Source: Octopus sinensis
Lineage: Eukaryota
Length of the DNA stretch: 64,000 bases
Assembly: GCF_006345805.1 (NCBI RefSeq)
Contig: NC_043014.1
Location: 14,508,001 to 14,572,000 of the forward strand
Direction of reading: 5' to 3'
Shown: positions 19,101 to 22,100 of the stretch, one piece after another
Numbering within the stretch: the first letter of the stretch is position 1
How the letters are laid out: every line of letters begins with the position of its first letter
Program-made: the position numbers and the translations under genes
Notes under the pieces: generated by a model
Databases searched by the model: none
The model's input: only the letters and a program-made list of their open reading frames with translations
Told to the model about the DNA's origin: nothing

Positions 19101-22100
19101 AATTTTGCCCAATGTTCTTCCAGTTATGCCAATCCATCACACTAGCAGCAGCCACAACAACAACAGCAGCAGCAGCAGCAGCTGCTGCTGCTACTACTAC
19201 TACTACTACTACTACTACTACAAAAAACCCGTCAAATGTTATTTAAATAGAACTATTTGTCACGATCAGCCAACCACTGTTCTGTAGCTGATTGCAATGT
19301 GTCATCTCAAGGGAAGTCTTTGCTGTTCAATTTGTGCTTCAAATATGGAAACAGATGAAAATTACAAGGGAAGAACCGTTTACTCTTCAAAGCCAGATTC
19401 ACAAATGGTAGTTTCTGACACCTAAGCCAAGTGAACTGGTGCACAGTTATGAAGATGCAGAACACTGCTAAGCAATATTCCACAAATGAAATATTTTGAA
19501 TATATGTCTATATCTACAGGGTGTCCGTAAAGTCATGGTGCAAACTACAAAATTACTCCATTCCTAAGCTTGAGCAATCAGAAATGATGGAGACTACAGT
19601 TCTTCAAAAAGATGGTGCACCTTATCATTTCGCTCTGCAAGTCAGGCAGTTTCTAAGTGAGAAATCCCCTAACAAATGGATTGGAAAAAGTGGACCCTTA
19701 TTTTGGCCCTCATGTTCACCAGATTTGACTCCACTGGATTTCTTTTTATGGGGGCATGTGTGAAAAGTATTCTTTATTCAACCAAGCCTCGATCTTCAGA
19801 AGACTTGAAAGCAAGGATAACTGATGTGATTGAAGGTGTTACTGAAAATTAGCTAAAAAATGTTTTCTGAGAACTGCAGAATCATATTATTCTTTGTATT
19901 ACTAATTATGGTGGACATGTTGAAAATTAACAAGATGAATACAAAACTTAGGTCATTCTTCTTTATTATCCTTTTTACATATTAATTCTATTGTGTATAA
20001 TCATGAAGATACAAGTATTTTAAATTGCACCATGGCTTTATGGACACTCTATATAACTGCAAATTATATATATATATATATATATATGAAAGAAGGCTTG
20101 AAAATGCAATTTTAAAGATGTTTATTCACTTGACCGGTTTCACTTTTTTAGAAAAAGATTGTCAAAAGTAAAATGTAAAGCTTTGTATAAGCTTTGTTGT
20201 GTTAAGTACTGGTTGTCACAAAAGTATTAAAATACATATATACATTCTTTGATAATAATAAGAAAAACCTACAGAATTGGTCCCCAGAGCAGTGGAAGTA
20301 TGTCATTTTCTCAGACAAGTCATCCTTTACTTTATTTCTGAACACCAGTCGAGTATACATGTGGAGACAGTCAAAAGAAGCATTTGATCCGGACTGCCTT
20401 CTTCCAACTGTTAAACATGGAGGAGGATCTGTGATGATCTGGGGGAGGGTGATATATCTAGGAAATCTGCCGGCCCAACGGTTTCCCTCCATGGTAGAAT
20501 TAATGGGCAAGACTATTCAAGCATTTTCCCTGATCAAATTCATGCTATGGTTGCAGAACTGTTTCCGGAGGGAAACAAACTTTCAGGATGATAATGCACC
20601 AATTCACACAGCTAAAGATATTACTGAATGGCTTGAAGAACATTCTAGTGAAGACGAACATCTTATCTGGTCACCAAAGTTCCTAGATCTCAATATTATT
20701 GAACATTTATGGTGCATTTTAGAAAAACAAGTAAACAGTCAATATCCTCCACCATCTGTGCTGGTGGCACGTAAAAAGCACCATTTGTACGTGGCCGATG
20801 CAAGCGCTGCCTTGACTGGCTGCCGTGCTGGTGGCACGTAAAAAGCACCAACCGATCGTGGCCGCTGCCAGCCTACCCTGGCACCTGTGCTGGTGCCACC
20901 TAAAAAGTACCATCTGTATATGGCTGATGCCAGTACCGCCTTGACTGGCTTCCGTGCTGGTGGCACGTAAAAAGCACCAACAGATCATGGCCGCTGCCAG
21001 CCTTCCCTGGCACCTGTGCCGGTGGCATGTAAAAAGCACCATCCATATGTGGCCGATGCCAGCGCTACCTTCACTGGCTTCCGTGTCGGTGGCAAGTAAA
21101 AAGCACCAACTGATCGTGGCTGCTGCCAGCCTACCCTGGCACGTAAAAAGCATCATCCACACGTAGCCGATGCCAGTGCCGCCTTGACTGGCTTCCATGC
21201 TGGTGGCACATAAAAAGCACCAACCGATCGTGGCCGCTGCCAGCCTACCCTGGTACTTGTGCCAGTGGCACGTAAAAAGCACCATCCGTACGTGGTCGAT
21301 GCCAGTGCCACCTTCACTCACAAGGCTTTGGTAACGATCATGCTCGAATGGTGTCTTAATGTGCCATCGGCACGAAGGCAATTATCTCACTCATATGGTA
21401 CTCTTAGCGCTCCACTAGCAATGGATGCCAGTCACCGAGTTTGATTTTGATTTTGATTTCACTTGCCTCAACAGGTCTTCGACATAACTTAGAGGTGGTT
21501 TGGCTGCTATGTTTACCAGGCTAAGTGACCATGCAGTGATTCAAAAAAATGTTGTTATTGTTGATACCTCTGGTATTTGAGTACTCTTTTTTCCACCTTG
21601 TTTCACATTTATGTGTTTACTCCGGTATATATACATACATATATATATATATATAGATATATATACATACATACATACATACACACACACACACATATAT
21701 ATATATATATATATATATATATATATATATATATATGCTTACGGCCATATCACGTTGAAAGCACCGGTTCTCGTCTGATCACCGAAGTTAAGCAACGTCG
21801 AGCCTAGTCAGTACTTAGATGGGTGACCGCTTGACTATACTCGCGGAGTGGTTGGCGTTAGGAAGGGCATCCAGCTGTAGAAACTCTTCCAGATCAGACC
21901 GGAGCCTGGTGCAGCCCCTGGCTTCCCAGACCCCGGTCGAACCGTCCAACCCGTGCTAGCGCGGAAAACGGACGTTAAACGATGATGATGATGATGATGA
22001 TATAAATACACACACACACACACACACATATATATATATATAAATAAATATATGTATACACATTGTGTTATATGTAAACTACATAATACGTGCGTGACTT

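Follow-up and report, generated by a model that had tools for sequence, protein, structure and literature searches.

A stretch of 64,000 nt of Octopus sinensis contig NC_043014.1 (assembly GCF_006345805.1, positions 14,508,001 to 14,572,000 of the forward strand), hereafter the window, contains a composite element of 265 nt (window positions 21737-22001, + strand) in which the 5′ part of a 5S rRNA is fused to the 3′ end of an RTE-type long interspersed nuclear element (LINE) and is closed by a (GAT)7 microsatellite. As judged from its sequence, the element has the architecture of a 5S-headed short interspersed nuclear element (SINE) that would borrow the RTE machinery, and we consider it probable that it is one copy of a 5S-headed, RTE-tailed SINE family of the SINE3 type. 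Directly observed are the composition of the element, its exact 5′ start, the junction, the structured tail shared with the LINE and the lack of a 5S 3′ end.

The head (21737-21833, +) corresponds to 5S nt 1-97, as revealed by an Rfam match and by alignments to real 5S genes, and begins exactly at 5S nt 1, immediately 3′ of a (TA)n tract. The cmscan analysis gave a single 5S_rRNA match in the window (21737-21857, +, 79.9 bits, E 2.4e-15) and no further one in the whole window, partial matches included, when the threshold was relaxed to E ≤ 1. Rfam lists this match as full length (1-120); most of the non-canonical pairs are found in the last 24 aligned bases, and the sequence beyond nt 97 makes the full-length call misleading. 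The comparison set consisted of 54 loci of genuine invertebrate 5S genes, which are eukaryotic DNA within contigs of metagenome-assembled genomes (MAGs), obtained by a search for a 5S box C pattern in the genome contigs of GTDB. In BLAST against these loci the alignments began at element nt 1 or 4 and showed 79-93% identity; nearly all of them ended at element nt 97. Past this position the real genes read GGGAATACC..TTTT, whereas the element reads ACTATACTCGCGG; in the multiple alignment, the real genes run on as GGGAATACCGGGTG..TAGAC-TTTT and the element as ACTATACTCGCGGAGTGG. The junction at nt 97/98 reads GACCGCTTG|ACTATACTC.

The head stops on the final base of the internal control region (ICR), nt 97, and the type 1 internal promoter of RNA polymerase III (Pol III) is kept, at the level of the sequence, in all of its parts. 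In Xenopus numbering, box A (21786-21800, +), the intermediate element (21803-21808, +) and box C (21816-21833, +) match the consensus of 18 real invertebrate genes at 15/15, 4/6 and 16/18 positions, respectively. Over the whole head, 11 of the 97 positions differ from this consensus, a value within the range of the real genes' own differences (1-12 positions), and only one base is absent from every real 5S gene compared. Thus, the near-consensus sequence together with the match of the boxes identifies the head as a nearly undamaged 5S nt 1-97. The two changes in box C, 81 G>A and 95 C>T, are found together in a genuine gene (L036); in the eukaryotic helix IV model, 5S positions 81 and 95 pair with each other. 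On the other hand, a functional 5S gene, with a complete RNA of ~120 nt, a closed helix I and a T-run terminator, is not what is found here, the LINE tail following after nt 97. The 265 nt contain no TTTT that could act as a T4 terminator, the first one being at 22319, 318 nt downstream. The GTGGTTGGC of the tail was considered as a mimic of the lost strand of 5S helix I, and discarded: Rfam pairs 7 of its 9 positions, yet the minimum free energy folds of the element are not 5S-like (z-scores of −0.26 and −1.59). No tRNA-like head was detectable in the element.

The tail (21834-21980, +) comprises, according to BLAST and alignments, the last ~147 nt of the 3′ untranslated region (UTR) of an RTE-type LINE, and the terminal (GAT)7 (21981-22001, +) is the 3′ end common to all the intact tails of the LINE family. 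Element nt 98-264 have matches at 15 or more further sites of the window (70-91% identity, E down to 5e-59), and 16 tails of this family are present in the 64 kb. Upstream of the junction point, the other copies carry LINE 3′-UTR sequence rather than 5S, consisting of tandem units of 55-65 nt that end in ..GGTGGCACGTAAAAAGCACCC and are followed by ACTACACTC. The first-pass annotation had proposed a 5S starting at nt 1, with the internal promoter complete to about nt 97, and a switch from there into a LINE 3′ tail; Rfam and the alignments to real 5S genes agree on the former, and the latter is borne out by the end of the 5S alignments at nt 97 and by the matches of the tail to the other window copies. 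The assignment of the tail to the RTE family with its large copy at 36686-39718 is correct as to the family, the tail of this copy (39558-39718) being 86% identical to that of the element; however, the closest relative in the window is a short 5′-truncated LINE 3′ fragment on the opposite strand (34580-34748, −, 91% identity). Likewise, the proposed end in (GAT)n within an (AT)n tract is right in motif and flanks, but lies at 22001, one base further than position 22000.

Tails of the same family were also found outside the window. Six copies occur in 21 kb of Octopus vulgaris chromosome OX597814.1 (L017), a region fetched through an Octopus vulgaris RTE protein (P0045), the sole such protein in the database, and none of the six tails in these 21 kb is preceded by a 5S head. 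A search with a composite query yielded no additional octopus proteins of transposable elements. In the related RTE copies L019 and L018 (GCA_024449705.1), tails are present and 5S is absent. L019, an ENA metagenome scaffold (XUSH22-1_SAMN16869661_METAG-scaffold_13390, 1-2043), holds an RTE copy 75% identical in nucleotides to the window LINE, whose tail is 78% identical and has the terminal hairpin as well; the sequence suggests that this sample holds DNA of a related cephalopod.

The alignment of the tails, analysed by RNAalifold, gave a predicted structure of 37 pairs in which 92.6% of cells are paired. Seven of these pairs are changed on both sides, compared with 2.7 ± 1.3 in shuffles and 1-5 in slid controls, so that the comparative support for the structure is fair. 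At the 3′ end (21943-21974, +), helices 7 and 8 form a nested hairpin, CGTCC...GGACG around CCGTG...CGCGG; pairing in helix 8 extends to 100% of cells, and the element copy bears in this hairpin a compensatory change from A-U to G-C. On the basis of the model, the nested hairpin is likely the element recognised by the reverse transcriptase (RT). Five substitutions are private to the element tail, all of them transitions and all in predicted stems, and they break no pair: C-G becomes U.G, U.G becomes C-G, A-U becomes G-C (two changes) and U-A becomes U.G. In simulations of random transitions, this pairing-preserving pattern was reached in about 0.2% of cases (P about 0.002). None of the 21 other sampled tails has the private states of the element, whose diagnostic tail states are CCCGTGCTAGCGCGG, ACCGGAGCC and ACTATACTCGCGG. 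Moreover, four of the five private substitutions create CpGs (P about 0.003). The element tail (21834-21985) has 13 CpGs. Fourteen other tails, some of them from old families or from a second species, have 0-10, and the younger-copy consensus (10 copies) has 6; with respect to this consensus, 7 of the 12 substitutions of the element tail create a CpG. If the predicted structure is correct, the private changes point to a replicating RNA lineage in which they became fixed under selection on the hairpins, and not to decay after insertion. Two other origins of the substitutions were considered and set aside. Editing by ADAR was ruled out as an origin of the A>G changes, since T>C changes are just as numerous on the same strand and the stems are short. 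For the hairpin sites, an independent CpG decay in the other copies does not account for the CpG excess either: all the 14 other tails read CATG..CATG there, and the alternative TG product is seen in none.

The surroundings of the element agree with the insertion habit of the LINE family, which shows (TA)n on both sides. In about 10 of the 16 tails of the family, (TA)n follows (GAT)n directly, and in several it is present on the 5′ flank as well; the tails with noted 3′ flanks end at 4547, 28526, 35226, 39718, 42087 (−), 47751, 54016, 58090 (−) and, for the element, 22001. This association reflects either a preference of the endonuclease for (TA)n targets or the seeding of (GAT)n(TA)n microsatellites; microsatellite seeding has been reported for RTE elements in Lepidoptera. 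The 5′ flank of the element, ATACATACA(CA)n(TA)n (21671-21727), and the 3′ flank, ATAAATACA(CA)n(TA)n (22002-22058), are the candidate left and right copies of a target-site duplication (TSD). Their local alignment covers 57 columns with a score of 84; the match is imperfect, with microsatellite on both sides, and the shared pattern reads ATA.ATACA(CA)n(TA)n over ~57 columns.

A possible course of events for a SINE of this type would be as follows. A master copy would be transcribed by Pol III from the 5S position +1; the RT of the LINE would recognise the terminal stem-loops of the tail and the (GAT)n, while the LINE endonuclease would nick a (TA)n-rich target, and target-primed reverse transcription would copy the composite RNA to its 5′ end. 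The founding event of the family would have been an RT template switch, or an RNA ligation, between LINE RNA and 5S rRNA. The element shows the head, the promoter sequence and the LINE-shared tail by which SINE3 elements are recognised; beyond these features, we infer its membership of a many-copy family, which indirect evidence favours, its transcription by Pol III and its mobilisation by the RTE machinery. With somewhat less assurance, we favour a fairly young octopod SINE3 family with thousands of copies, whose tail would have evolved independently of the partner LINE, through compensatory stem changes and gain of CpGs, as part of an octopus-specific expansion of SINEs. A rarer variant would be a nascent SINE with a very low copy number, soon after its birth by template switching.

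The octopus DNA sampled amounts to 85 kb (the 64-kb window and the 21 kb of L017) and contains one composite copy, which gives a 95% lower bound of ~1,700 elements per genome of 2.8 Gb, assuming that the window is random. In a 2026 repeat annotation of Octopus vulgaris, both automated and curated, four ‘5S’ SINE families cover 9.83 Mb, 0.35% of the genome (PMC13282606 supplement), and the element makes up 0.41% of the window; at 265 bp per copy, 9.83 Mb would correspond to ~1 copy per 75 kb, in agreement with the density observed here. In the giant squid, ~24,000 5S-derived loci have been listed as ‘likely SINEs’ (PMC6962438). Neither paper describes the sequences or the junctions of the 5S elements (PMC13282606; PMC6962438), and we found no paper in the literature with a sequence-level description of a cephalopod 5S SINE. 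The possibility of an ‘undescribed’ cephalopod family, raised in the first-pass annotation, stands in this sense only, since ‘5S’ SINE families of Octopus vulgaris (PMC13282606) and 5S loci of the giant squid (PMC6962438) have been listed. Searches in public collections containing no bulk cephalopod DNA gave no second junction: an 18-mer scan of the JGI metagenome contigs returned 16 loci, all chance matches of 18-23 nt, while a 21-mer in the GTDB genome contigs and a 25-mer in IMG/VR returned none. The 46-aa open reading frame (ORF) crossing the junction (MGDRL|TILAEW...) gave no homologous candidate in the protein collection searched, and exact look-ups of four element ORFs were negative.

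Several observations weigh against a many-copy SINE family. A second copy of the junction is absent from the window and from L017, 85 kb in total, and the sampling argument does not hold for a window that was picked instead of being drawn at random. The ‘recently active’ ‘5S’ family of Octopus vulgaris consists of 7 insertions over 42 kb, ~6 kb each (PMC13282606); because of this size per insertion, the published ‘5S’ class may hold arrays or composites instead of SINEs, and its coverage could be inflated by shared LINE tails. As for the insertion site, the match of the flanks may represent a long TSD, but it is ambiguous, and their low complexity rules out a firm call. Finally, the test on the private substitutions is post hoc, with a structure predicted from an alignment that includes the element itself, and the structure-preserving changes may just as well be those of an RTE subfamily, outside the sampled tails, from which a one-off chimera took its tail.

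The latter event, a single chimeric retrocopy that never propagated, is the alternative that best withstands the evidence, even though we regard it as rather unlikely. The RT working on an RTE LINE RNA would have switched after ~165 nt to 5S nt 97, or the two RNAs would have been ligated before. The anatomy of such a chimera, a small RNA in sense orientation 5′ of a 5′-truncated LINE 3′ end in a single insertion, is what is seen here. The start at nt 1, the sense orientation, the truncated LINE part and a single insertion with a candidate TSD are explained by it too, and a single copy in 85 kb is in its favour. Furthermore, 5S segments with a truncated 3′ end are known from the 5S/L1 chimeras of mammals, the breakpoints lying near nt 46 and 90; these chimeras are, however, mostly antisense, and the sense chimeras with snRNA (for example U6) carry the full-length small RNA (bioRxiv 10.1101/2025.02.02.635956). 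A breakpoint on the last base of the promoter would be rare for a random switch, ~20% of random breakpoints keeping the whole ICR, and the five pairing-preserving private changes (see above) would be unexpected after a dead-on-arrival insertion. Unless such chimeras are very common, to meet so rare an event in a 64-kb window is improbable. The lack of microhomology at the junction is also, weakly, against a switch of this kind.

Far less credible is that two separate events produced the composite, that is, that an older 5S gene or retropseudogene was struck at nt 97 by a 5′-truncated RTE insertion. The LINE family is locally very abundant, with its 16 tails in 64 kb, and nested insertions are common; but the remainder of the 5S, nt 98-120, was found neither behind the (GAT)n nor elsewhere in the window (no hit for a degenerate 22-mer with up to 3 mismatches), which leads us to reject a LINE insertion into an older 5S pseudogene. 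The downstream search for this 5S 3′ end had been indicated in the first-pass annotation as the way to recognise such an insertion, and its outcome lends no support to it. Upstream, the element is without 5S spacer or array context, and the (CA)n(TA)n motif of the 5′ flank continues in the 3′ flank, as in a single insertion. Just as improbable is a LINE 3′ end whose unit array at 20756-21320 and tail at 21834 were once contiguous and were parted by later insertions, a 5S retrocopy included: the array has the same orientation, lies 415 bp upstream of the element and lacks its own tail, but it stops mid-unit (..GCCACCTTCACT|CACAAGG) and not at the ..GCACCC preceding the tail in intact copies, so that a deletion would be required in addition, the 415 bp between are unrelated sequence plus an inverted LINE-UTR fragment, and the head abuts the tail directly, with neither TSD nor poly-tract of a 5S retrocopy between them.

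The proposed partner of the 5S-headed SINE is represented in the window by a 5′-truncated LINE copy (36686-39718, +), recognised by Pfam, nucleotide identity and alignment of the tail, which is 90% identical in nucleotides to an Octopus vulgaris copy. It includes an RT ORF (36617-38158, +, Pfam RVT_1, 1.9e-20) and an ORF with a C-terminal zinc finger (38303-39097, +, PHD-like in Pfam); of the APE domain only the C-terminal end is left, while the homologues carry Exo_endo_phos and RVT_1. Its 3′ UTR of ~620 nt consists of the 55-65-nt tandem units followed by a tail of the element type, and a short tandem repeat, (GAT)n on all the intact tails, stands in place of poly(A). It is plausible that this LINE belongs to the RTE clade, by analogy with RTE-2_OV, an RTE LINE expressed in the brain of Octopus vulgaris (PMC9115989), and given that RTE is the dominant octopus LINE (PMC13282606). 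RTE-2_OV has a single ORF of ~1,100 aa with endonuclease, RT and zinc finger, UTRs of ~600 nt, a repeat-rich 3′ UTR of ~600 nt and a microsatellite 3′ end (PMC9115989), like the partner LINE, the comparison being based on the published description of the architecture.

Some observations on the LINE family and on the databases used are reported here in their own right. A protein labelled in NCBI as Salmonella enterica serovar Derby (P0015) shows 46% identity to the C-terminal part of the LINE ORF, of which 97% is covered, and is almost certainly a eukaryotic contamination of the Salmonella assembly. In the Octopus vulgaris region, the nuclear-receptor gene neighbouring the RTE protein locus spans 135 kb. 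At window positions 35179-35299, two LINE tails lie head to head and form a (GAT)n(TA)n(ATC)n palindrome, which gives sub-threshold Rfam matches to mir-2513 and mir-598 on both strands; some of the 172 ‘mir-598’ loci listed in the giant squid genome paper (PMC6962438) might be artefacts of such LINE-tail palindromes. Among the GTDB loci L020-L073, dozens of bacterial MAG contigs consist of tandemly repeated eukaryotic 5S rDNA with a period of ~0.9-2.1 kb, for example in Hormoscilla CAWUFA03, Anaerolineae CBDAUV01 and Ekhidna CBDHDT01; these arrays are contamination of the bins by host or other eukaryotic DNA.

As for the genomic context, the whole window is part of a gene for a dynein heavy chain, encoded on the minus strand, with exon-like ORFs between 1012 and 60008. 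Its AAA4 exons fit cytoplasmic dynein 2 heavy chain 1 (DYNC2H1) far better than other dyneins, with 158 bits against at most 85, and the element is antisense in a DYNC2H1-like intron whose neighbouring exons lie at ~31.8 kb and 15.7 kb. The dynein exon-like ORFs on the minus strand are located at ~59580-60008, 57303-57596, 51424-51741, 48848-49423, 47581-48006 and 42565-42885, and further ones at ~39903-40220, 31735-32220, 15618-15758, 7113-7358 and 1012-1182. The tailless array of the LINE-3′-UTR type (20756-21320, +) counts ~6 units of 65/129 nt, and its start overlaps the C-terminal end of a Tc1/mariner-like DDE_3 ORF (20359-20841); downstream of it, an inverted fragment of the LINE 3′ UTR is found at 21440-21480. 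A tandem repeat of 495 bp (44329-47179, 5.8 copies, 99% identical) is a very young satellite-like array inside a dynein intron.

Octopus genomes consist of SINEs to over 10%, the greater part of this fraction being ‘unclassified’, with 1,279 families (PMC13282606). If the element does belong to a family with 5S head and RTE tail, this would give a name to one component of the unclassified octopus fraction, would connect this component with the RTE LINEs whose expression has been reported in octopus brain and would add an independent origin of SINE3. Since Rfam scores the element as a full-length 5S above the gathering score, the cephalopod ‘5S’ counts, among them the 24,000 loci of the giant squid, likely include elements of this 5S-LINE type. 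The tail substitutions would offer, under the modelled structure, a small testable example of a non-autonomous element that keeps the recognition hairpins of its LINE. Nothing in these findings would surprise a transposon specialist.

Zebrafish SINE3, reportedly introduced by Kapitonov and Jurka in 2003, and the SINE3 class as a whole have a 5S-derived head and a LINE-dependent retroposition, as proposed for the element; in zebrafish, however, the tail is CR1-like and not RTE, and SINE3 families have thousands of documented copies. The cephalopod Ceph-SINEs and the octopus OK/OR SINEs are also mobilised by LINEs, but their heads are reported to be tRNA-derived with type 2 promoters (Akasaki et al. 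2010; Ohshima and Okada 1994), while the head of the element is 5S-derived. The mammalian 5S/LINE-1 and U6/LINE-1 chimeras (Buzdin et al.; bioRxiv 10.1101/2025.02.02.635956) resemble the element in having a small Pol III RNA 5′ of a 5′-truncated LINE 3′ end in a single insertion; the TSDs that flank them have a candidate counterpart here. They form by template switching or prior RNA ligation, are driven by L1, end in poly(A), have unique junctions, do not propagate and, in the case of 5S, are mostly antisense (bioRxiv 10.1101/2025.02.02.635956), whereas the element has a sense 5S with the whole promoter and an RTE tail with stem-loops and (GAT)n.

The closest parallels are found among the 5S-headed SINEs, which arose repeatedly and have RTE tails in HaSE3, CoeSINE5 and SINE-1_Pmo; in the accepted model of SINE origin, a LINE-derived 3′ part acquires its small-RNA head through a template switch (PMC3272025; PMC5786205). 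Like the element, HaSE3 of Helicoverpa armigera, CoeSINE5 of the coelacanth and SINE-1_Pmo of the python combine a 5S head with type 1 promoter and an RTE 3′ end, and their presumed mobilisation is the same. They differ in living in other hosts, in their independent origins, with no sequence relation to the element beyond the 5S, and in being families, while the element is known here as a single copy; moreover, CoeSINE5 and SINE-1_Pmo also have pieces of the RTE 5′ UTR, whereas in the element the head joins the last ~150 nt of the 3′ UTR without any body. On the whole, the octopus element is probably a further case of this known combination of a 5S head with an RTE tail.

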